From positions 62,001 through 126,000 of the IMG/VR virus record IMGVR_UViG_3300049001_000044: DNA of 64,000 bases. One strand, 5' to 3'. Within the stretch, counting starts at the first letter, position 1. Each line of letters opens with the position of its first letter. The notes below the pieces were generated by a model. That model saw only the letters and a program-made list of their open reading frames with translations. It was not told the DNA's origin and did not search any database. A program made the translations under genes and the position numbers. Below, piece after piece: positions 4,550 to 62,709 of the stretch.

Positions 4550-5797
4550 TTACAATGTGAAACGCGTGATATCCCCATTGATAATTTCTCCCTTGACCCA
4601 CTCACCAAAGGCATTACAGCCTATCAATCTCGTGGGGCCCTGGCGAGAAGCGAGGAGAGACCAGATTTCTCTGAAGAATCCTTCTCCCACCTCTAGTCTT
4701 CTCTTGTAGTAGTTGAGAGGAGAGGCGTAGATGTCTGCAAAGTTTACCACGACGCTGCTTTCAATATCCAAAATTTCCTTGATGAAGTCTTCCAACTCAT
4801 AGGATAGGAAGTCAACTTGCTTATAGATAACTTCCACATCCTTCAACGGCTGCACCACTGCGTACTCATCGCAGTCAAAGTCGCCAACCATGACTGCTTT
4901 TTCGGCTGATGGAAGATCCTTGAAGGTGCTCACCACATCGCCGTATAGTACGCTACTCTCTGCCGAAAATAGCAGGTGTTGGAAGTCAAGTGCCTCTTGC
5001 GAACGGTCCACGACGTAGATTTTCTTTACCTTGTAGTGCTCAGCCAGGATGAGAGGAGATAGTCCGGCGGCGTGCGTGATAAGTACGTCTGCCACACCAT
5101 CAGGGAGGTCAGGTAGCTCCTCACCACTTTCGTGCATGACGACATGTTGGAGTTTAGCAAGCACTTCCTTTTCAAAAATCGATTCAAAGTGCAGCTCGTG
5201 GTAAGGTGTTTTGAATTCGAACAGGAAGGTACCCTCTTCTAGTGGTAGGTTGTAGAACCTACCGTACTTTTTCAACTGTGCATTGATGAGCAGGCCGCCT
5301 CTCGCGGCATCATCCTTGCTAACCATTGCATTTTCGCCGTTCCTTTCCAAGCCATCGCTGACTTCTTTGAAGCCAACACCGATCATCTGCGTACCATTGA
5401 ACTTGGGCGAGTCGCATGCCTTCCATTCGTCGATGTTGAAGAACAAACATGTCTCTTCTAACCGCGCATATTCAACTGTCTTGCTAGCATAGCCGACTAC
5501 CATGTTGTCGCAGTACCGCTCTAAGCGCGCAACACTTTGCTCGTCATAAATGATGTGGTTGGCACTTTGCACAACGAGGTACTTCGTCTCGCACGTCCCA
5601 AGCGCATGGTCCACGCTGTCACGAAGTAGGATGTGTTTGGCATTCAGTTTGTCACGGAAGAATGGGATGAATGCTTTCGCAAAATCCCAATGCCAGTTTG
5701 GTTCGCCATCCTTAGGATTGAGGATGGCGATAGTTAGGTCGTCTCGAATCATTTCAATGTCCTGTAGTCCGGATGGTGCGCACGACAACGTCCCCAT
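4550..5797 (-). CDS. hypothetical late protein, possibly a Rossmann-fold modification enzyme
   Basis: 415-aa ORF; GATAAATA late promoter inside a hairpin upstream. Confidence 0.5.
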   Translation of the reverse strand: MGTLSCAPSGLQDIEMIRDDLTIAILNPKDGEPNWHWDFAKAFIPFFRDKLNAKHILLRDSVDHALGTCETKYLVVQSANHIIYDEQSVARLERYCDNMVVGYASKTVEYARLEETCLFFNIDEWKACDSPKFNGTQMIGVGFKEVSDGLERNGENAMVSKDDAARGGLLINAQLKKYGRFYNLPLEEGTFLFEFKTPYHELHFESIFEKEVLAKLQHVVMHESGEELPDLPDGVADVLITHAAGLSPLILAEHYKVKKIYVVDRSQEALDFQHLLFSAESSVLYGDVVSTFKDLPSAEKAVMVGDFDCDEYAVVQPLKDVEVIYKQVDFLSYELEDFIKEILDIESSVVVNFADIYASPLNYYKRRLEVGEGFFREIWSLLASRQGPTRLIGCNAFGEWVKGEIINGDITRFTL

Positions 5798-11292: not shown

Positions 11293-11922
11293 TTAACCCA
11301 AATCAGTTTGCTCTGCGTGGTACTTCTGTGGATTCTTGTCGTCTCGCCATACCTTGACGTGGATAGGATCGTGGAGCTCGACATTGTCTTTGTCATCTTC
11401 TCCTCTCCAATCTTCGTTCTTCAGCGTGATGTTGAAGATTGCCCAGGCAACTTCCCTTCCGCTCTTCTTCCAGCGGCCGCGAAGATCAAGTGCGTCGACT
11501 CCCTTGTCGTCAATCCATGCATCTGCGATCTCACCCATGTGGATGTGATTTTCATCGCAGACTTTCTTCAGGGCTCCATCGCTCAGCCTGATCTCGTCTT
11601 CGAAGGAATCTTCGAAGCGTTGTGCTTTGCTCGCCCGGTCAGCCTTGTCAGTTTCCGCCTTGACCGTTTCAGGGTCGCGCAGCTCCTGTGCCTTCCAACC
11701 TGGCTTGAGATCGTCTTTGCTTGGTTGATGTTCGAAGCGTTGGGAAGTACCGTCAGGGTAGAAGGCGAAATAGACCTTGTGCTTTCCCTTGCCGTTGACG
11801 CCCAGCTTACCCACCAAGTCTCCCTTGATGATCTCGCCATACACCTGGCCACCTACTCGCTCAAGACGAGCAATCAGGTCTTCAATCGTGGTTTTATTTT
11901 CTAGCAGCTCATGGACTTTCAT
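11293..11922 (-). CDS. hypothetical, putative head-packaged protein (MKVHELLE)
   Basis: Leader motif; TAAATA upstream at 11959-11964. Confidence 0.6.
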   Translation of the reverse strand: MKVHELLENKTTIEDLIARLERVGGQVYGEIIKGDLVGKLGVNGKGKHKVYFAFYPDGTSQRFEHQPSKDDLKPGWKAQELRDPETVKAETDKADRASKAQRFEDSFEDEIRLSDGALKKVCDENHIHMGEIADAWIDDKGVDALDLRGRWKKSGREVAWAIFNITLKNEDWRGEDDKDNVELHDPIHVKVWRDDKNPQKYHAEQTDLG

Positions 11923-22604: not shown

Positions 22605-22928
22605 TCAATCCTTTTCTCGGGAGACCGCCTCCTCGAAGATATCCCACATGGAGTTCTTCCATCCAGGCAACGTCGTGATATCGGTCCCCTTGTTAATCAT
22701 GCCAATTACAGTGTGTCCTTCGTCCTTCGTGAGGCGGACTTCTCCGACAGTGACTGCGTTAATCAACTCAACTGAATAACCCAGGTCTTCCTCAGCGTAT
22801 CCTTGACCGTATGGATGACGTTCAATACCATGGTGCTCCACCCTGTAGGTGATAAGCACGTCCATCATATCCACGCCTGCATCGCAAAGCAAATCAAAGT
22901 CGCGGTAAACCAAAGTCTTCATCATCAA
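22605..22928 (-). CDS. hypothetical protein
   Basis: ORF. Confidence 0.6.
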   Translation of the reverse strand: MMMKTLVYRDFDLLCDAGVDMMDVLITYRVEHHGIERHPYGQGYAEEDLGYSVELINAVTVGEVRLTKDEGHTVIGMINKGTDITTLPGWKNSMWDIFEEAVSREKD

Positions 22929-40096: not shown

Positions 40097-41491
40097 TTAT
40101 ACAGCGATCATGTTGCGGCCCTTGAACTCCAGGACTGCGTCATCAGCCATTTCCACGACCTTGTCGAAGCGGATACCGCCACTTGCATCCTTGCGGTTGA
40201 GGGTGGGGAAGCGGAGGGATGCGTGCTTCTTCGCCTTCGTCTTCGACACTTCCTGGAACTTGATCACGGCCGTGGCACCCAGGTATTTCTTGGGGTTAGC
40301 CAGCATGTCTGCCCGCATGTCATCGTTCAGACCCGAGCCGACACAGGTTTCGAAGTAGATGCCATCGTCAGTCCAGCCCGCCACCACGATGCCGCCGACG
40401 GTATTCGCGAGGCGGGATTTGGGGCGACCGTAGTAGAAGCCAATGATGCGAGCGTCCGCCGGGTAGAAGCGCTTGACCTTGATCCAGGTGAAGGTGCGAT
40501 CCCACTCATAAGTGCTGTTCAGGTTCTTCAGGATCAGGCCCTCGATCTTCCTCGCCTTGTTCTCCGGCATGTCGATGGCTTCGTCGCAGTACTCCAGCAT
40601 GTCCGCCTCGTCTTGAACGATGCGTCCTTCCGTGAGGATGATCTTCTTCAGGCCCAGGGCTGGCAGGAGTTCAGCCAGGTACGCACGATTCTGTTCCATC
40701 GTGATGCCGCATTTCTGTGCCATCCAGTCCGTGAGCGGCATGAGGAAGAATGCGCGGAGCCGGAGGGATGCCTTGGCCTCGGTGTTGCCCGCTTTCTTCG
40801 CGTTCACTGTGGCCTCAAAGCCCAGGTCAGAGATGCGTTCGCAGTCCAACACGTAGTCGAATCCCAAGTGGTTGCGAATCTTGTAGAGCTCTTCGTCGAA
40901 GAGGCCGAGGATGTGGGAGGATTGTTTGCCCGACCGGGAGAAGGGGAGGATTTCGTCCTTCTTGACCATGATGATCGTGCGCTCGCCGTCGTACTTGAAG
41001 TCGGCTTGGCAGGGGAAGGTGATGTAGTCCCCGAATTCCATGTCCTCACCCATCTTCTCGGCCAGCATGACCTCGAAGGAAGGGATCACCCCGTACTTGT
41101 CCTTCAGCACCTTGTTCACAGTGTCGGCGGAGAAGCCCGCTTTCAGGTCCTTGTCCAGGATTCGTGCGAGGTAGCGTTGGGTTTCGTGGTCGAAGTAGGA
41201 GAGGGAGTCTGACACCGCCTCTCGTGCGTCATTGCCCGTGAGCTCCTTTGCATCCAGCTTGTCGAGGAGCTGGAAGAACCGGTCGTAATCCTTCTGGGAT
41301 GCGGGGACCTTCGCATCGTCTCCCGGCATATCGAATTTGCGAACGCCGAAAACGCGGAAGGGATTCTGAGCTTCCCAGATCAGCCGCCAGGTATTCTTGT
41401 CGGCTTGTTGCAGGGCAGCCACAATGGCTTTCTTAGTCCCAGCACCGCCAGCAGATTCCGCGGCTTTGATGACTTGTACGAAGTTACTCAT
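40097..41491 (-). CDS. ATP-dependent DNA ligase (T4 gp30-like)
   Basis: KYDGER, EGLILK, WIKVK, VGSG, SLRFP. Confidence 0.92.
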   Translation of the reverse strand: MSNFVQVIKAAESAGGAGTKKAIVAALQQADKNTWRLIWEAQNPFRVFGVRKFDMPGDDAKVPASQKDYDRFFQLLDKLDAKELTGNDAREAVSDSLSYFDHETQRYLARILDKDLKAGFSADTVNKVLKDKYGVIPSFEVMLAEKMGEDMEFGDYITFPCQADFKYDGERTIIMVKKDEILPFSRSGKQSSHILGLFDEELYKIRNHLGFDYVLDCERISDLGFEATVNAKKAGNTEAKASLRLRAFFLMPLTDWMAQKCGITMEQNRAYLAELLPALGLKKIILTEGRIVQDEADMLEYCDEAIDMPENKARKIEGLILKNLNSTYEWDRTFTWIKVKRFYPADARIIGFYYGRPKSRLANTVGGIVVAGWTDDGIYFETCVGSGLNDDMRADMLANPKKYLGATAVIKFQEVSKTKAKKHASLRFPTLNRKDASGGIRFDKVVEMADDAVLEFKGRNMIAV

Positions 41492-41612
41492 TCTTGGTTA
41501 ACCTCAGTTTGTTGTTTTGATAATGTTATTATACCAAGGTTCCTGCAAAAGTACACAACTTTTTTCACTCGTGCCACATAAATATCTGGACGAACCCTAG
41601 ATCTAGGAACCC

Positions 41613-42260
41613 ATGACCATGATCAATCTCGAAAACTTTAAACCTATAAAGCCTTGGCCGACTACAGGCTTCATGCACAACGACAAAATGTTCAGTGATG
41701 AAGATTTTGCGAAGCTCAAGAACTTCAATTTTCGTAAGTGCCAACTCACTGCGGCTGAAGGCAATCGTAAGAGCAAACAGTACTGGAGAACCCAGGACAT
41801 TGACCCAAATGATCCAGCAGAAGTTCTGATCAAACAGACTCTAGAGCAGCTTGATGATTGGGAAGTTCTCAAAGCACTTACCCTCAAAGCATTAGCAAAT
41901 GAAGGACTAACTCCGTCAGATGTGTGGACTGGTGATATCGATGATCTGAAGGATCACTACCTCGGCGTGTTCTGTGCCGTTCATGAAGATGACGCAGAAT
42001 ACTATTTGACGACCCACCTAGATTCAAGACCACTTCTTCAAGTGTACATTGAACCAGATGGGGCGCCAGTTGGAACATACTTCTATGAGATGGATGATTA
42101 CTCGAAGTTTGTGCAGTTGCCATTCAAAGAAAACACTGGATATTTCCAGCTTCATGTTAGACGTGGCTGGCACAGCGTGAGGAACATTCCTGGCGTAACG
42201 AGGCGTTCGATAATTTTCGGGTGGAACATGATGTTCAGTGACAGATTTAGAATGAAATAA
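41613..42260 (+). CDS. 2OG-Fe(II) oxygenase-like protein
   Basis: HLD...GT.F...WHSV...RRS; late promoter CATAAATA at 41577-41584. Confidence 0.7.
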   Translation: MTMINLENFKPIKPWPTTGFMHNDKMFSDEDFAKLKNFNFRKCQLTAAEGNRKSKQYWRTQDIDPNDPAEVLIKQTLEQLDDWEVLKALTLKALANEGLTPSDVWTGDIDDLKDHYLGVFCAVHEDDAEYYLTTHLDSRPLLQVYIEPDGAPVGTYFYEMDDYSKFVQLPFKENTGYFQLHVRRGWHSVRNIPGVTRRSIIFGWNMMFSDRFRMK

Positions 42261-42269
42261 AAAGGGAGC

Positions 42270-42860
42270 CTAGGCTCCCTTTACTTGATCGATTGCCCAC
42301 TTTCGTTCTGTGCAGTGGAAGCAAACTCCGCATGGTGGAATGCTATCATGCTTGGGACATGAACGAGTTAAATCGAGCAAATCATTTACACCAAGCAATG
42401 AGTACAGATAGATCGTCGCGCGCTTATCGAATGTCACGAACGGTGTTGCGTACCCTCTGTACTTGTTATCCATTGCAGTCAATGGACGCATTGGCTTAGG
42501 TCCAGTGTAATCCCAGTTGATTGGATTTTGAGTCACGCCAGTGTAGAGCCAATCGACTTGCTCCATGGTTTCGTAGATGTCTCTACGAAGCAATCCATTC
42601 TCAAGAACGAACTCATGCACCCTAGATCGCAAATCCACGTTGAATTTGTTTTCAAGATAGATGAGTGTGTTATCAATCGAGGCATTCTTCAAGTCTTTTC
42701 GGTACACGACAAAAATTTTGTCAGGCACGACCCCATTTACAAGTAGGCAGTACAGAAGAATTACACTGTCTGCCCCGCCCGAATACGAGATGCCGGTCAT
42801 CCCATCATGCAGCGGGATGATCACGTTTCGATAGGGGGTCTTGTAAATGATTTCCTTCAT
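42270..42860 (-). CDS. QueC-like PP-loop ATPase
   Basis: SYSGGADS; TRSC..CGVCFHCTERKWA. Confidence 0.75.
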   Translation of the reverse strand: MKEIIYKTPYRNVIIPLHDGMTGISYSGGADSVILLYCLLVNGVVPDKIFVVYRKDLKNASIDNTLIYLENKFNVDLRSRVHEFVLENGLLRRDIYETMEQVDWLYTGVTQNPINWDYTGPKPMRPLTAMDNKYRGYATPFVTFDKRATIYLYSLLGVNDLLDLTRSCPKHDSIPPCGVCFHCTERKWAIDQVKGA

Positions 42861-44434
42861 TACGACTTGATACCTTTACCTTGGACTGATTCTTGATCAA
42901 CCTCTTCTAGGAAGGTGAACGAGCTTGATGCGCTCAACTCATCTAGCATTGGTTTGATATCAGACGATACAGCATCTGGTGTCACCAAGAAGAAATAAAT
43001 CTTGGGTGAGACGAATGTAATGCCTGGACAGTGTAGAGTCACGGTGAACCACATCTGCTTAACATTCTCGCCTGGGGCTAGTTGTGTCCCTGGAGTGATT
43101 CGGATACCAACCACGCCGTCATCAGACACTACCGAGTTTTGCAAGATAGTAGCCATCTCAGCATCACCAAATTGCAGCGAGAAGACCAGGTCTTCTTTTT
43201 CAATCTGGGATAGCACGTTAACTGGCATCAGCATTTTCACGTCGACCTTCATATCAGCAGTGCCGCCGAGGGTGTTCGTACCCAGATACTGGATGTTGTT
43301 ATCTGGAAGCGAGTTAGTGTCTGGGCGATGCAGAAGACGATTTTCTGTTTGACTCACCTTATCATTCAAAATCAGCGCATTGTAGGTCGAATCGGCGATC
43401 ATGACGTCCTTCACCTCTTGCGCCATTGGGGCGATCTTGTTGATGCCGAACAGTGCCGATGCAACGCCACTTGCCAACGCGGCCGAGAAAGAAGAACCGG
43501 TGTTAAGCGTGTACTCATCTACCGCATTGAAGCCCGCAACGTCAACGTCTTTAGCTGGCGCATACAGATCAATTTTCTTGTTCACACCATAAACCTCAGC
43601 GAATTCATGATCGTCACTAGTGCTACCTGCAACGGTGAAAACACCCGCCAGACCAGCAGGAGTAACCTCGTCGATGTTTGTGAGAGTGTTACCAGCAGCC
43701 GCAACAACCATCATGCCTGCATCGATGAGTTTGGTAATTTTCGCGTTGATGTACTCGCTCGCTGGGATACGCCACGACATATTCACGACCATTGGCACAT
43801 CGAGTTTCGTCTGACGGTATTCGTAGACTTGGTCGATCAAATCACCCAGTTCACTGATGGATGGTTTGCGAGTAGCATCGCTGACCTTTACGATCTTGAG
43901 TGTTGCGTTCTTGTTGACACCGAGCGTTTTACCAGCTACGAGAGATGCAATTGCAGTGCCGTGACCCAACGTATCTTCGGTGTCAGTGAAATCGGGGAGG
44001 GTGAAGAGGTCTTCGATTTGCACGCCCTCGAACTCGACGTGGTCCTTTCTGATTCCGCTATCCATCACAATAACTTCTACCGATCGCTGCGCTTCAACAG
44101 TCGCAAGATATGGGTTGGCGACAAATGGGGCGTAGCGATTTGCGATTCGATTCTGCGCCCACCCCAGCATTTTGATTGGTGCTTCAGCAGGTTCTAGGAT
44201 TTCGCCTGCTTGAATACGACTGACGGGATCGGCAACTATTTCAGTGGTCCAGCCATCGTCGGTCTTTACATGAAACAGAATAGGCTCGCCAACAGCCACG
44301 CAGGACACAAGTCCTTCGGCTTTCAGAGCCATGTTAATCAAGCCGATCGGAATGTTTGACAGATCGGTCTCGTCAGTCTTGAGCAAGAACAGGTTAGCTT
44401 GCTCAGTAGTTGCGAAGGTTAGTTGAAGTTTCAT
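42860..44434 (-). CDS. S8 subtilisin-like serine protease
   Basis: DSGI, HGT, AAAGN, GSSFSA catalytic triad motifs. Confidence 0.9.
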   Translation of the reverse strand: MKLQLTFATTEQANLFLLKTDETDLSNIPIGLINMALKAEGLVSCVAVGEPILFHVKTDDGWTTEIVADPVSRIQAGEILEPAEAPIKMLGWAQNRIANRYAPFVANPYLATVEAQRSVEVIVMDSGIRKDHVEFEGVQIEDLFTLPDFTDTEDTLGHGTAIASLVAGKTLGVNKNATLKIVKVSDATRKPSISELGDLIDQVYEYRQTKLDVPMVVNMSWRIPASEYINAKITKLIDAGMMVVAAAGNTLTNIDEVTPAGLAGVFTVAGSTSDDHEFAEVYGVNKKIDLYAPAKDVDVAGFNAVDEYTLNTGSSFSAALASGVASALFGINKIAPMAQEVKDVMIADSTYNALILNDKVSQTENRLLHRPDTNSLPDNNIQYLGTNTLGGTADMKVDVKMLMPVNVLSQIEKEDLVFSLQFGDAEMATILQNSVVSDDGVVGIRITPGTQLAPGENVKQMWFTVTLHCPGITFVSPKIYFFLVTPDAVSSDIKPMLDELSASSSFTFLEEVDQESVQGKGIKS

Positions 44435-44462
44435 ACGTTCATCCTTGAGGTTGTCTTCTCTA

Positions 44463-45413
44463 TTACTTATTGAGTAGGGAGAATTGGTTGTTGAGTTTTG
44501 TCAGTCTTCTTTCAACTGACGGTGACAGGCGCAATTCACTGCCATACTCGGGGTATTTTCCATGATTTGGATGTCGATACAGCTTCTCGAACATCCAAGC
44601 ATCGTGCGTCTGACTCTCAATCTGCTTCTTAACTAATTCGAAGCCGTTGAACTTTTGCTCCTGTGGGATTACGTCCAAGCCGTTGAGCCACATTCCTTTA
44701 AGCTTGCACCCATACCAGTCGATCTTCTCCTTGTTGATCGTCCGCATGTTAGGTTGCTGAAGCATGAAAGGGATTGCAATGTCCCTGCTGTAGGACAGGA
44801 AGTTTCCAAATATAGGAAACTTGTTCAACTTTGCGAACGTCATCCACGCAGATTGTGATCGTGTTGAAATGAACTCCCACTTTTCGTCTCGAAGACAGGG
44901 TGGGTTGCCACCACAGATGATCGAGGTGGCGTTGTTTTCCATGATGAGCATCTCGTAGAAGTAGAAATGCGTTGCGAACTGCGGTGATGGACATTCATAT
45001 CGCTCCACGAATTCCATTCTATCCCTTGACAGGAACCGCATGATGTCGACCTCATGCACGATGAAGGGTACCGCATTTAGCGCGCAAAAGTTCAACGCAC
45101 TCGTGACATCATGTTGGTTCAAATCGTCCTTGAACCTGAGGATGGCGGCGGTGAAAGGAACACCATTCCGTTTCAAAGCCAAACATGCTGCTTGGCTATC
45201 CACCCCGCCACTCAGTGCCACGAGCGGATTGTCTCCTAATTGGTTACCCAACCGTTTCACTGCATTGTCGAACCTCACACGCATTTCGTCGCAGGTGAAG
45301 CTCGCCACGTTGATGAAAGTGGTCGTGCTTTTCGATAGGCGCCACACGATTGTTCTATCCTCAAGGGTAGGATAGATCCAATCTTTTTCGAAGGGTTCGT
45401 AAGTGTGGTCCAT
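44463..45413 (-). CDS. PP-loop (asparagine synthetase/adenine-nucleotide alpha-hydrolase-like) protein
   Basis: VALSGGVDSQ. Confidence 0.65.
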   Translation of the reverse strand: MDHTYEPFEKDWIYPTLEDRTIVWRLSKSTTTFINVASFTCDEMRVRFDNAVKRLGNQLGDNPLVALSGGVDSQAACLALKRNGVPFTAAILRFKDDLNQHDVTSALNFCALNAVPFIVHEVDIMRFLSRDRMEFVERYECPSPQFATHFYFYEMLIMENNATSIICGGNPPCLRDEKWEFISTRSQSAWMTFAKLNKFPIFGNFLSYSRDIAIPFMLQQPNMRTINKEKIDWYGCKLKGMWLNGLDVIPQEQKFNGFELVKKQIESQTHDAWMFEKLYRHPNHGKYPEYGSELRLSPSVERRLTKLNNQFSLLNK

Positions 45414-45456
45414 GGACGTATTTATCCATGAACCATCAAGGCACCTCCTGGTGCCT

Positions 45457-45484: not shown

Positions 45485-45892
45485 TTAAGATGATGACTTA
45501 TTAGTCCGAAGGAACCGTTCCATCTCGTATAAACCTGGGGCGTGGTGCTTTTCGTTCACGTACGCGGAAACTTCCCGGAAGGTGAACTCGGCCACGCTGA
45601 TATACTCGCAGCGCTGCATGTACTTCTCAGCAAGGGTAACGTCCACGTACGTGTCGCCGTGCTTTACCCACGCGTGCTCGATTGGAGCCCCACCTTCAAG
45701 GATGAGGAATCCCAGCACGTACTTCGTGCTGTCATCGGAGACTTCGTGGAGGACAACCCTAAATGCATTGTTGAAGCACTGGCTCTGTTCGCTGCGGGCA
45801 TGGACTTTGGAGGTCACGTGAACCTCCTTGACGTCTACTGGCAAATACCGGTAATTCGACGCCATCATTTTGACGAGCTCGAGGGCGTTCAT
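45485..45892 (-). CDS. hypothetical protein (Cys-His-Asp, transglutaminase/papain-like)
   Basis: CFNNA...HAWV...DVT. Confidence 0.55.
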   Translation of the reverse strand: MNALELVKMMASNYRYLPVDVKEVHVTSKVHARSEQSQCFNNAFRVVLHEVSDDSTKYVLGFLILEGGAPIEHAWVKHGDTYVDVTLAEKYMQRCEYISVAEFTFREVSAYVNEKHHAPGLYEMERFLRTNKSSS

Positions 45893-46174
45893 TGGGGACT
45901 CCTTAAAGGAGGTATTTATGCTGGCCGGTTCTCACTCAGCCATTTTGCCTTCTGGGCCATTCCCTCAGGATCCTTTTCCACCTGCTCACGGGCAAACTGA
46001 TCCACAAAGTCCACCTCCCAGGGTTCCAACTTTCTTTCAAAATCCTGCTCGTGGATGAAGATGAGTTCTTGAAGGAGCTCGGCTGCGATCGTTTCTTTCC
46101 GCCGCCATCCTGCCCGTGCCACACTGTTGATATGCAACACGATGAGGACGGACAGGATGATTGCCTGACCACGA

Positions 46175-46390
46175 TCAGTGAACACGGCTTTTCCCCAGTG
46201 CTTTGTCGGCCATAATGATGGAGTCGATCGAGGACTGCAAGTTTTCGTACACCGACTGCAGGTGACTGCGCTGGACATCATCGCCCGTCTCCGAGATCAT
46301 CTGCTCCACCCGCTGTTTCTGCACGTGCAGATCGATCGCCAAGATGCTGTAGGCATTACTTTTCCAATTACGATTCGTGAGACTCATCAC
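46175..46390 (-). CDS. hypothetical protein
   Basis: ORF with RBS. Confidence 0.55.
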   Translation of the reverse strand: MMSLTNRNWKSNAYSILAIDLHVQKQRVEQMISETGDDVQRSHLQSVYENLQSSIDSIIMADKALGKSRVH

Positions 46391-46443
46391 TTCCTCCCAG
46401 GAAAAGGGGGCCCGAAATCCTTTCCATTCCGGGCCACTTGACT

Positions 46444-46791
46444 TTAGACGCGCAGCTTATCCATGTTGTTGCCAGCCGCGATGTATGCCTTCACCCATTT
46501 CGGGCGGGCACCCTTGCCTCCCCAGGTTTCTTGGGGGTTGTCGGGATTGCGGTACATCACCGCTGCACCCGGTGCGCGGTAGGTGAGGATTTCCGAGAGG
46601 GGCATGCCGATGTTGGCCGCGATCTGCATGATCTGCTCCACGGCCTGCTGGCGTTCGCGCTGCTCCACTTCCTTCGTCTTTGCGGCTACTCGCTCGGCCA
46701 GCTTTTTCAGATCCGCCGCACTGAGGTTGTCCAGCTGCGGGGTGATCTGCTCGAGGGCCACAGCCGAGAATTTGTTGTCTGCTTCTGCCAT
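46444..46791 (-). CDS. hns: H-NS family nucleoid protein
   Basis: YRNPDNPQETWGGKGARPKW DNA-binding motif; N-terminal coiled coil. Confidence 0.85.
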   Translation of the reverse strand: MAEADNKFSAVALEQITPQLDNLSAADLKKLAERVAAKTKEVEQRERQQAVEQIMQIAANIGMPLSEILTYRAPGAAVMYRNPDNPQETWGGKGARPKWVKAYIAAGNNMDKLRV

Positions 46792-46874
46792 TTTTGTTTC
46801 TCCTATTTCTACTTCTTCATCATCAAACCCAGAGTTTCCTCCGGGCACTCATCATCCGCGATTTGCGGGATTCC

Positions 46875-61801: not shown

Positions 61802-62709
61802 TGGTTACCCAGTTCGATGAACATTGCAGCCAGATTGATTTCGGTATCGGCCATGAGAGGATGGCGCGACAGGTATTCGGCGATGGTGACGATTGCTTGG
61901 TCTTTGTCCTTCACCTTCATCTTGTCGATGTTTTGGTACAGGAACTTGAACACGTCTTCATGCTCTTCACGAGTGGCAGACTCGCAGACCAACTTCCTGG
62001 CTTTCTTGAAGTCACCCTTCTGAATGCATTCCAGCAGACCAAACTTCCAGTCAGCGGCATCAGCACTCACATCCTTCGCACTTTGCAGTTTCTTGTTCTG
62101 CACATTTTGGGACAGGAGCTGGATAGTCTTGCGAATGTCAGGGTAGCCAACAGCCACGTAATCGCACAGGATCAGAGGATCATATTCCACCTTTTCCGTG
62201 TCCAGCATTTCTGCCATTCGCAGCGCAACCTTCTCTTGGTCAGGGGCTTTGAACGACACCTCTTGGAATCGGCTACGCAGCGGAGGGATGACCTTGTTGA
62301 CGTAGTTGCAGGTGGCGATGTAGCGGCAGTTCTCCGAGCTGTCTTCGATCAGCGAACGAAGCAGAGCTTGTGCATCGAGCGAGAGGTAGTCGAACTCTTC
62401 CAACTGAATCACTTTGAACTTACCCAGTGGGAAGGTCATTGCGAAGCCAACCGCCTTGTCACGAAGGGCTTCGATCTTTTCGTCCGAACATTTCAGCCTT
62501 AACACATCAGACGGATCAATTTGCAGATCGTTGATGAGGGCTTTGGAGATGGTGGTCTTTCCGGTGCCTTGCACGCCGAACAACAGGAGATTGGGAAGAT
62601 CACCGCTTGCTACGATGTTCTTGAAGAAGTTCTCTTGCTTATCGTCCTGAAAGATTACTTCAGCGATAGTCTTCGGGCGATAGCGTTCAACCCACAGCGA
62701 TGTTTTCAT
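61798..62709 (-). CDS. clamp-loader AAA+ subunit (T4 gp44 / RFC-like)
   Basis: LWVERYRP, G.QGTGKTT, LEEFD, AQ.LLR, LRSR. Confidence 0.92.
   Translation of the reverse strand: MKTSLWVERYRPKTIAEVIFQDDKQENFFKNIVASGDLPNLLLFGVQGTGKTTISKALINDLQIDPSDVLRLKCSDEKIEALRDKAVGFAMTFPLGKFKVIQLEEFDYLSLDAQALLRSLIEDSSENCRYIATCNYVNKVIPPLRSRFQEVSFKAPDQEKVALRMAEMLDTEKVEYDPLILCDYVAVGYPDIRKTIQLLSQNVQNKKLQSAKDVSADAADWKFGLLECIQKGDFKKARKLVCESATREEHEDVFKFLYQNIDKMKVKDKDQAIVTIAEYLSRHPLMADTEINLAAMFIELGNQ

Follow-up and report, generated by a model that had tools for sequence, protein, structure and literature searches.

A phage cassette pairing a subtilisin-type protease with a predicted asparagine-synthetase-like ATP enzyme, possibly for protein or peptide tailoring

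Several described systems couple proteolysis or ATP-dependent amide formation to the modification of proteins and peptides. In lasso peptide maturation, a transglutaminase-like Cys protease (B) is genetically coupled to an AsnB-like cyclase (C) that makes an amide from an adenylated carboxylate, with tailoring enzymes clustering alongside. Asparagine synthetase B, beta-lactam synthetase, carbapenam synthetase and Dph6 are likewise carboxylate-adenylating amide synthetases with an SGGxDS PP-loop, and AsnB-family enzymes adenylate carboxylates to make amides. Whilst most PP-loop families act on nucleotides or small molecules, lasso cyclases, Dph6 and the QueC-family protein N-terminal deazaguanylases Cap9 (type IV CBASS) and QatC show that such enzymes can act on peptide or protein substrates. 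Subtilases of the S8 family are also embedded in post-translational modification cassettes, as with cyanobactin PatA/PatG, lanthipeptide LanP and QhpE, whilst in phages QueC-family genes occur in 7-deazaguanine DNA modification clusters (dpdA with folE, queD, queE and queC).

The locus considered here lies within a 64,000-nt stretch (the window; positions 62,001 to 126,000 of IMG/VR record IMGVR_UViG_3300049001_000044) of a complete, DTR-bounded 343-kb soil jumbo phage genome. An earlier note, made from sequence alone, described a late operon of two PP-loop enzymes and an S8 protease converging on a late 2OG-Fe(II) oxygenase at a shared terminator, and this observation is confirmed, with all four genes placed as described (Table 1). 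The note's reading of the locus as a system for tailoring a virion protein or peptide, perhaps the protease's own C-terminal tail, is supported only in part. The core of the cassette, the protease and one of the two PP-loop enzymes (hereafter PPL), recurs in many uncultured phages and is not described in the literature searched.

Table 1. Positions of features at the locus, numbered from the first nucleotide of the window
Position	Strand	Feature	Length	Details
45913..45920	-	CATAAATA late-type promoter-like motif		20 nt upstream of the 135-aa ORF; followed by an AAGGAG ribosome-binding site; probable start of the transcription unit
45485..45892	-	Orphan ORF, probably first gene of the operon	135 aa	Not conserved with the module
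45444..45449		AGGAGG site		Belongs to the 4-codon mini-ORF
45422..45436		Mini-ORF	4 codons	Overlaps the GATAAATA motif
45419..45426	-	GATAAATA motif		Ends 5 nt before the PPL ATG
44463..45413	-	PPL, PP-loop ATP pyrophosphatase with predicted asparagine-synthetase-like synthetase fold	316 aa	No glutaminase domain; core partner of the protease
42860..44434	-	S8A (proteinase-K-type) subtilase	524 aa	Prodomain about 1-85; catalytic domain 86-372; Ig-like beta-sandwich about 372-510; disordered tail 516-524
42270..42860	-	QueC-family, Cap9-like PP-loop/Zn enzyme	196 aa	Start overlaps the S8 stop by 1 nt; accessory gene
42261..42282	.	Palindromic hairpin between the convergent genes		9-bp stem, 4-nt loop; overlaps the last codons of the QueC-like gene
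41613..42260	+	2OG-Fe(II) oxygenase (P4H/PF13640-like)	215 aa	Own late-type promoter; convergent with the operon
41577..41584	+	CATAAATA late-type promoter-like motif		28 nt upstream of the oxygenase ATG

PPL carries an SGGVDS PP-loop but returns only weak Pfam hits, with sequence similarity limited to the PP-loop region. The loop residues S68, G69, G70, D72 and S73 are conserved in 98-100 % of 177 family sequences, and the family has its own invariant set, with N99 and R280 present in all, and D102 (94 %), S143, P144, G257, F258, E259 (99 %) and K262 (93 %) conserved in 93-100 %. The AF2 model (pLDDT 94.6) resembles the synthetase domain of asparagine synthetase and its relatives, with VIA-align giving Z scores of 14.8 to AsnB/ASNS, 13.6 to beta-lactam synthetase and 12.7 to carbapenam synthetase over about 270 aligned residues. 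No N-terminal glutaminase (Ntn) domain is present, as only about 55 residues precede the PP-loop domain and no GATase hit was found. A sulfurtransferase of the [4Fe-4S] TtuA/NcsA/LarE type is not indicated, since C77, C110 and C141 are conserved in only 27, 59 and 81 % of the 177 members, respectively. PPL is about half the length of lasso cyclases and lacks their N-terminal domain, and no lasso cyclase structure appeared amongst the matches. The family is almost entirely viral: its nearest Atlas clusters are 95-100 % viral, whilst the cellular Atlas neighbours all carry PF00733.

The protease matches Peptidase_S8 (E 3e-18), and its catalytic residues D125, H158 and S315, together with the oxyanion N249, are invariant in 53 homologues. 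Its AF2 model (pLDDT 88) superimposes on aqualysin I with a Z score of 37.9 and an rmsd of 2.0 Å over 274 residues at 29 % identity, indicating an intact proteinase-K-type enzyme. Weak NCBIfam hits to the QhpE and PatA models lie far below curated cut-offs, and no cognate partners of those systems (YcaO, LanM, QhpD) are present. The suggestion in the earlier note that the C-terminal tail is one candidate for the modified substrate is not supported, as alignment occupancy over the last 24 residues is 0.47 and residues 516-524 model as disordered (pLDDT about 34). It is similarly very unlikely that this enzyme is the capsid maturation protease. Although expression appears to be late, no separate precursor gene exists, and S8 carries a C-terminal Ig-like domain of a kind common on virion proteins, a canonical T4 gp21-type prohead protease (Peptidase_S77, E 1e-24) with its own late motif is encoded elsewhere in the genome, and the modules are not linked to structural genes in related phages.

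The QueC-like protein harbours an SGGADS loop and a C(x)8CxxCxxC zinc motif, with S27-G-G-x-D31-S and the C168/C177/C180/C183 pattern conserved in 19 homologues. PF06508 matches only its C-terminal 55 residues, at 22.3 bits against a cut-off of 22, although a homologue is annotated by JGI as a 7-cyano-7-deazaguanine synthase. The YxQxHxxE, VPxRN and YPDC motifs of canonical QueC, within which Y35, R99 and Y131 were shown by mutagenesis to be essential (PMC13329287), are neither present nor conserved. The earlier note had argued against simple 7-deazaguanine synthesis because no queD, queE, folE or dpdA gene lies in the window, and a search of the complete genome bears this out, as no TGT/DpdA, PTPS (QueD), GTP cyclohydrolase I (FolE) or radical SAM (QueE-type) gene was found. 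Synthesis of preQ0 or ADG for DNA or tRNA modification from host-made CDG is therefore very unlikely. The closest solved relative is instead Cap9, which modifies protein N-termini: a profile of the homologues matches 9nto_B at E 1e-8, with residues 13-186 aligned to 4-186, and the PADLOC CBASS QueC model (PDLC00911) matches at E 2.5e-6, in keeping with a minimal QueC fold of about 185-190 aa. Here too, however, the CDG-binding signature that Cap9 retains (Y/FxQ(x)5E, H(x)4YxDC and RN; motifs as given in PMC13329287) is absent from the aligned positions, and only the ATP and Zn sites and the PF(x)4K lysine are kept. The genome has no Cap10/TGT or QatABD partners, and no CD-NTase lies amongst the gene's neighbours, which are S8, PPL and an oxygenase. 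The similarity to Cap9, along with weak matches of S8 to the defence subtilase and IetS models, might suggest counter-defence, in which the Cap9-like enzyme, and perhaps PPL and S8, would target or mimic immune proteins that rely on N-terminal deazaguanylation (type IV CBASS, QatABCD), or would cleave and inactivate defence proteins. We consider this unlikely, given the missing CDG-binding motifs, defence-model matches that fall far below curated cut-offs, the poor fit of a late-type promoter with an early anti-defence role and the absence of the QueC-like gene from most modules.

The oxygenase has no Pfam hit, yet an HxD...H...RxS arrangement (H133, D135, H185, R195 and R196, followed by Ser) is invariant in 9 homologues, and its Atlas model matches PF13640-bearing clusters at TM 0.67-0.77, in keeping with the double-stranded beta-helix fold of P4H-like enzymes. 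Its homologues sit on the same contigs as PPL homologues, but direct homologues occur only in the closest clade, with other 2OG families taking its place elsewhere.

With regard to conservation of the neighbourhood, which the earlier note had proposed as a check, the four genes are functionally linked but are not one obligate unit. Amongst 44 lineages dereplicated at 70 % identity, S8 lies within 6 kb of PPL in 40, in three different gene orders, whilst a GNAT gene is adjacent in 22, some 2OG oxygenase in 22 and the QueC-like gene in 13. Pairwise distances of PPL and S8 correlate at r = 0.91 (Mantel p = 0.001), and two anciently diverged module types co-reside in the same genomes, including this one. 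One lineage has a GNAT::PPL fusion, and in other clades an AspH-like oxygenase overlaps the PPL start and a P4H-like oxygenase follows S8. Some of the surroundings do, however, point towards nucleotide, cofactor or tRNA chemistry, in which the two PP-loop enzymes would act on a nucleotide, NAD-type cofactor, tRNA base or sugar (for example by amidation or amidine formation, with GNAT supplying an acetamido group), with S8 merely activating or regulating them, or being functionally separate. Sequence-level PPL hits are to the PP-loops of NAD synthetase, MnmA, GMP synthase and NcsA, the second module in this genome is flanked by two NUDIX hydrolase genes and a 5′-nucleotidase (NT5C) gene, related loci carry metallophosphatases and RNA-repair-type genes, with Tpt1, TROVE and PTH2 amongst the genes found there, and a cellular homologue is paired with GNAT but has no S8. 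This alternative remains possible but is not favoured, as S8 adjacency in 91 % of lineages, together with co-divergence and paired duplication, is hard to explain if S8 is unrelated, as the predicted fold over the whole domain is closer to AsnB and beta-lactam synthetase than to NAD or GMP synthetases (Z 14.8 against about 10), and as the conserved accessory oxygenases belong to families best known as protein or peptide hydroxylases.

A true RiPP pathway, in which S8 would cleave, and PPL would macrolactamise or amidate, a separately encoded precursor to give a secreted or intracellular bioactive peptide, is doubtful. A protease paired with an AsnB-like ATP enzyme is the logic of the lasso B/C pair, and 2OG oxygenases, GNAT and radical SAM/SPASM genes lie nearby in some loci. 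A candidate precursor is a small Zn-ribbon DUF6171 gene of 60-94 aa, found in the S8-then-PPL module type and translationally coupled to S8 in 17 of 44 lineages, yet this protein is conserved along its whole length with fixed Cys ligands, and so looks like a folded Zn domain and not a leader-plus-core peptide. The module in the window has no small ORF, its intergenic gaps being 28, -1 and 71 nt, and no RRE (PqqD-like) domain or transglutaminase-like protease was detected in the operon proteins by Pfam search.

Collectively, the locus is best read, with moderate confidence, as one copy of a conserved phage module almost confined to viruses, whose obligate core would be an intracellular proteinase-K-type S8 endopeptidase and a dedicated PPL of about 300 aa, to which different phages add a GNAT acyltransferase, a Cap9-like QueC-family ligase, and P4H-like or AspH-like 2OG oxygenases. 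Each of these enzymes belongs to a class with precedents on protein or peptide substrates, making protein or peptide tailoring the best available reading. What the analysis demonstrates is the genetic linkage and co-divergence of PPL and S8, the conserved catalytic residues, the fold similarities of the models, the missing que and dpd genes and the motif shared with structural genes; the chemistry and the timing of expression are inferred, and the only sequencing runs that hold this sequence are of soil DNA. The most likely mechanism would be to 'cleave and cap', whereby late in infection the protease cuts a protein or peptide and the ATP-dependent enzymes then adenylate a carboxylate and convert it to an amide. 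PPL would amidate, ligate or cyclise a protein-borne carboxylate, the QueC-like enzyme would join a small carboxylate, not 7-carboxy-7-deazaguanine, to a newly exposed amine, and the oxygenase would hydroxylate a side chain. No virion-protein target and no RiPP precursor was found, and no substrate or precursor gene is conserved with the module. Because PPL and S8 duplicate and diverge as a pair, the substrate may lie within the pair itself, for example at the S8 prodomain junction, although some S8 members lack the prodomain, which therefore cannot be a universal substrate, and complex prediction for S8 with PPL gave no verdict; it could equally be a virion or host protein.

The label 'late' is an inference, albeit one with real support. 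The TATAAATA-like -10 element typical of T4-type late transcription units is represented here by (G/C)ATAAATA, which lies within 60 nt upstream of a same-strand start in 34 of its 62 occurrences in the genome, including those preceding genes for tail sheath, TerL, tail tube, head-tail adaptor and the gp21-like prohead protease, and which is carried by both transcription units of the cassette. One correction to the earlier note is, however, required, as the motif it took for the PPL promoter lies much closer to the start codon than the usual 22-32 nt, such that a role as the main promoter is doubtful, whilst a canonically spaced example precedes the orphan ORF, with which the operon probably starts. 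This ORF appears to be unique to this phage, having no Pfam or PHROG hit and no relative in viral contigs, the PDB or any of the loci retrieved. At the opposite end of the operon, the convergent genes are 9 nt apart, and the hairpin spanning this gap has a T-run that is strong on the minus strand and weak on the plus strand.

The window is bases 62001-126000 of an IMG/VR virus record that is 343,229 bp long, carries direct terminal repeats and is rated 100 % complete. The record derives from a soil metagenome, and no RNA run was found to hold the sequence. The phage itself is a distant T4-like jumbo myovirus, encoding a tail sheath, a tail tube, TerL, a head–tail adaptor and a prohead protease of the T4 gp21 type (Peptidase_S77). 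Its TerL is 43 % identical to that of Ralstonia phage RsoM2USA (343.8 kb), with Atu_ph07, XacN1 and Xoo-sp13 being the next closest.

The observation made in the earlier note holds, as all four open reading frames of the proposed modification cassette are present as described. On the minus strand, a PP-loop protein (PPL) is followed after 28 nt by a Peptidase_S8 (S8), the stop of which overlaps by 1 nt the start of a QueC-like gene, whilst a 2OG oxygenase gene converges from the plus strand. The 9 nt gap between the convergent genes is spanned by a perfect hairpin with a 9 bp stem, displaying a strong T-run on the minus strand and a weak one on the plus strand. The coordinates of these and other features are collected in the table below.

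Coordinates of the cassette and of additional features (L-numbers designate individual loci, with positions given within each locus)
Feature	Coordinates	Strand	Details
Gene preceded by (G/C)ATAAATA	window 4550-5797	-	
Gene preceded by (G/C)ATAAATA	window 11293-11922	-	
Gene preceded by (G/C)ATAAATA	window 22605-22928	-	
ATP-dependent DNA ligase	window 40097-41491	-	PHROG 114, E 7.5e-71; immediately beside the oxygenase gene
Motif of the oxygenase gene	window 41577-41584		CATAAATA
2OG oxygenase	window 41613-42260	+	215 aa
Hairpin between convergent genes	window 42261-42282		
QueC-like protein	window 42270-42860	-	196 aa
S8 protease	window 42860-44434	-	524 aa
PPL	window 44463-45413	-	316 aa
ATAAATA motif in front of PPL	window 45419-45426		
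AGGAGG site and mini-ORF	window 45422-45449	-	mini-ORF of 4 codons; stop codon 45422-45424
Orphan ORF	window 45485-45892	-	135 aa
Motif of the 135-aa ORF	window 45913-45920		CATAAATA
Orphan ORF	window 45916-46281	-	121 aa
Terminator-like hairpin	window 46409-46435		strong; follows the H-NS-type gene
Protein with H-NS C-terminal DNA-binding domain	window 46444-46848	-	134 aa; E 6e-13
Second module (DUF6171, S8, PPL)	genome 53688-56453 (L074:5689-8454)	-	outside the window
AspH-like oxygenase and GNAT	genome 188672-191654 (L075:3673-6655)		outside the window
Cellular PPL homologue	L088:8001-10184		561 aa; 1.89-Mb contig
Modules beside further modification genes	L002:1517-5845 and L089:163-5207		relatives of the module

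The description of the cassette as late in the note rested on an ATAAATA motif. Genome-wide, 34 of the 62 occurrences of (G/C)ATAAATA lie within 60 nt upstream of a same-strand start, and the genes so preceded include those for the tail sheath, TerL, tail tube, adaptor and prohead protease. The motif is therefore a credible T4-like late promoter element, and a usable predictor of putative late promoters for this phage group, with timing inferred from sequence alone. One correction is, however, required: the copy in front of PPL, which the note had taken as the promoter of that gene, ends 5 nt before the ATG, whereas the usual spacing is about 22–32 nt. A well-spaced copy, followed by an AAGGAG site, instead precedes the orphan 135-aa ORF, and the transcription unit therefore probably comprises the 135-aa ORF, PPL, S8, the QueC-like gene and the hairpin, in that order. 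Immediately upstream of PPL, a strong AGGAGG site is followed 7 nt later by the mini-ORF, which stops inside the GATAAATA motif, 8 nt before the PPL start codon (ATG at 45413). This arrangement may serve translational coupling or reinitiation for PPL, which has no ribosome-binding site of its own at normal spacing.

At the sequence level, PPL matches known families only around the PP-loop. Structure prediction with AF2 from a 31-sequence alignment gave a pLDDT of 94.6, and comparison of the model by VIA-align ranked asparagine synthetase (Z 14.8, 271 residues), beta-lactam synthetase (Z 13.6) and carbapenam synthetase (Z 12.7) above LarE, NAD synthetase, TtuA, QueC and Cap9 (Z 9.5–11.7). The nearest Atlas clusters (TM 0.73–0.78) are 95–100 % viral, whilst the cellular neighbours after them all carry PF00733 Asn_synthase. 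PPL has no glutaminase domain. Across 177 family members, N99 and R280 are invariant, and the PP-loop residues, D102, S143, P144, G257, F258, E259 and K262 are conserved in 93–100 %. The possibility that PPL is an Fe-S sulfurtransferase was considered, but is ruled out as its cysteines are not conserved across the family.

The S8 protein harbours an invariant D125/H158/S315 triad together with N249. Its predicted structure (pLDDT 88) displays a prodomain (1–85), a low-confidence linker (86–90), a proteinase-K/aqualysin-like catalytic domain (Z 37.9, rmsd 2.0 Å), a C-terminal Ig-like beta-sandwich and a disordered tail. By inspection there is no signal peptide. A P-[IV]-K-[LM]-[LM] motif is conserved at the end of the prodomain, although some members lack a prodomain altogether. 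A role for S8 as the prohead protease was rejected, because the gp21-type protease is present elsewhere in the genome. Similarly, the note had proposed the C-terminal tail of the protease as a candidate substrate; however, this tail is neither conserved nor ordered. Complex prediction for S8 with PPL returned a score of 0.20 against a mark of 0.32, and is not used as evidence either way.

The QueC-like protein retains SGGxDS, the C(x)8CxxCxxC zinc site and the conserved lysine. It lacks the YxQxHxxE, VPxRN and YPDC signatures of canonical QueC, in which Y35, R99 and Y131 were shown to be essential (PMC13329287), and also the variants of these motifs that Cap9 retains. Despite this, its best solved relative is Cap9 (E 1e-8, full length), and it also matches the PADLOC CBASS QueC model. 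With regard to 7-deazaguanine synthesis, searches of the complete genome found no TGT/DpdA, PTPS/QueD, GTP cyclohydrolase I or radical SAM gene, each of these searches having returned hits in 10–14 of the 14 control genomes. This extends to the whole genome the absence of such genes that the note had seen within the window and, together with the missing motifs, makes synthesis of preQ0 or ADG very unlikely. Accordingly, routine annotation is corrected, in that the 'QueC' gene in these phages should not be read as evidence of 7-deazaguanine DNA modification. The oxygenase has an invariant HxD...H...RxS motif and a predicted structure matching PF13640 clusters; its assignment rests on these two features, as profile–profile alignment (hhalign) of its family against the other 2OG clusters found in these neighbourhoods showed no significant relation.

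PPL homologues were recovered from metagenomes (47 clusters) and from IMG/VR (61 loci), and an exhaustive HMMER search of 1.84 billion representative proteins found 853 representatives at E ≤ 1e-10, each standing for a 50 %-identity cluster. By contrast, megablast of the region and tblastn of three diverse PPL proteins against 50,697 cultured phage records gave no match, with S8 giving only distant hits, and a scan of prokaryote genome contigs with the PPL profile, for which only one peptide pattern was usable, gave one weak hit. Among 44 lineages dereplicated at 70 % identity, each with at least 3 kb of flank, S8 lies within 6 kb of PPL in 40, a GNAT in 22, any 2OG oxygenase in 22, a DUF6171 Zn-ribbon protein (60–94 aa) in 17, a QueC-like gene in 13 and a metallophosphatase in 11. 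Gene order varies (PPL then S8; DUF6171, S8, then PPL; or divergent), but the pair persists, and PPL and S8 distances correlate at r = 0.91 (Mantel p = 0.001). Alignment by hhalign of the DUF6171 protein against PPL, S8 and the QueC-like family found nothing. Direct homologues of the oxygenase in the window occur only in the closest clade, where they sit beside PPL, whilst in other clades an AspH-like gene overlaps the PPL start and a P4H-like gene follows S8. One lineage has a GNAT::PPL fusion next to S8 and a B12-radical SAM gene. The only clearly cellular PPL homologue seen is a longer protein with an uncharacterised C-terminal half of about 250 aa, which is followed directly by a GNAT, with no S8 nearby.

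Two ancient module types co-reside in single genomes, including several other jumbo-phage genomes as well as the one studied here, in which a second, anciently diverged module is found in the order DUF6171 small Zn-ribbon protein, S8, PPL. This module is flanked by two NUDIX hydrolases and a 5′-nucleotidase (NT5C), neighbours that favour the main rival explanation, namely nucleotide or cofactor chemistry by the PP-loop enzymes; the near-obligate linkage to S8 counts against it. Far from both modules, an AspH-like oxygenase and a GNAT lie together, of the families that in other phages sit upstream of PPL and follow S8, respectively, and next to them is a 465-aa gene with the late motif.

Taken directly from the analysis is that the cassette is real and appears to carry late-type promoters, and that its core is PPL plus S8, with the QueC-like gene and the oxygenase as recurrent accessories. 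What the cassette does, including the timing of its expression and the chemistry of its enzymes, is inferred. In this view, every recurrent partner of the protease either makes amide bonds (AsnB-like PPL, Cap9-like QueC, GNAT) or hydroxylates side chains (P4H- and AspH-like oxygenases), and, as the protease would make new amine and carboxylate termini, the most economical model is proteolysis followed by ATP-dependent capping, ligation or cyclisation of a protein or peptide. Co-duplication and co-divergence of PPL with S8 suggest a specific physical or substrate relationship within the pair. The interpretation in the note, that the cassette tailors a virion protein or peptide post-translationally, is thus supported only in part, as its candidate substrate is not borne out and no precursor gene was found. 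The 135-aa ORF was considered both as a conserved partner and as a lasso-B-like protease, but has no relatives in any of the searches made.

A more far-reaching possibility, which can be held only tentatively, is that the PPL–S8 pair defines a new, virus-specific post-translational modification system. Here, the subtilase would create a new protein terminus, which a dedicated AsnB-like ATP enzyme would then convert into an amide, isopeptide or conjugate, with a Cap9-like QueC enzyme and a GNAT also acting on it in some phages, and with 2OG oxygenases hydroxylating the product. The target would be a virion or host protein, making this a 'cleave-and-cap' chemistry not yet described for viruses. 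The PP-loop family is large, almost confined to uncultured phages and without an assigned function, yet it is locked to a subtilase across deep divergence. If the pair performs ATP-dependent capping or ligation of proteolytic termini, it would add a new enzymatic logic to phage biology, and would give PP-loop and QueC-family enzymes a protein-directed role on the virus side of the arms race, to match the recently found Cap9 and QatC on the host side; the enzymes themselves could be useful for peptide amidation or ligation. Literature searches for this gene combination, for DUF6171 and for phage RiPP systems found no description in the searchable literature, and the 2026 survey of the QueC family does not cover a phage cluster linked to S8. 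Tailoring cassettes that combine a protease with an ATP-dependent amide synthetase are already known, and the present cassette, a proposed variant of these, is built on a previously unrecognised, virus-restricted AsnB-like family.

In some relatives (loci L002 and L089) the module sits beside radical SAM/SPASM enzymes, an O-fucosyltransferase-like gene, a B12-binding radical SAM gene and an ART-PolyVal ADP-ribosyltransferase-like gene, which are further candidates for protein or peptide modification. Within the window, the 121-aa ORF, like the 135-aa ORF that is probably co-transcribed with the module, is an orphan with no detectable relatives. Finally, the phage-encoded H-NS mimic suggests a proteobacterial host.
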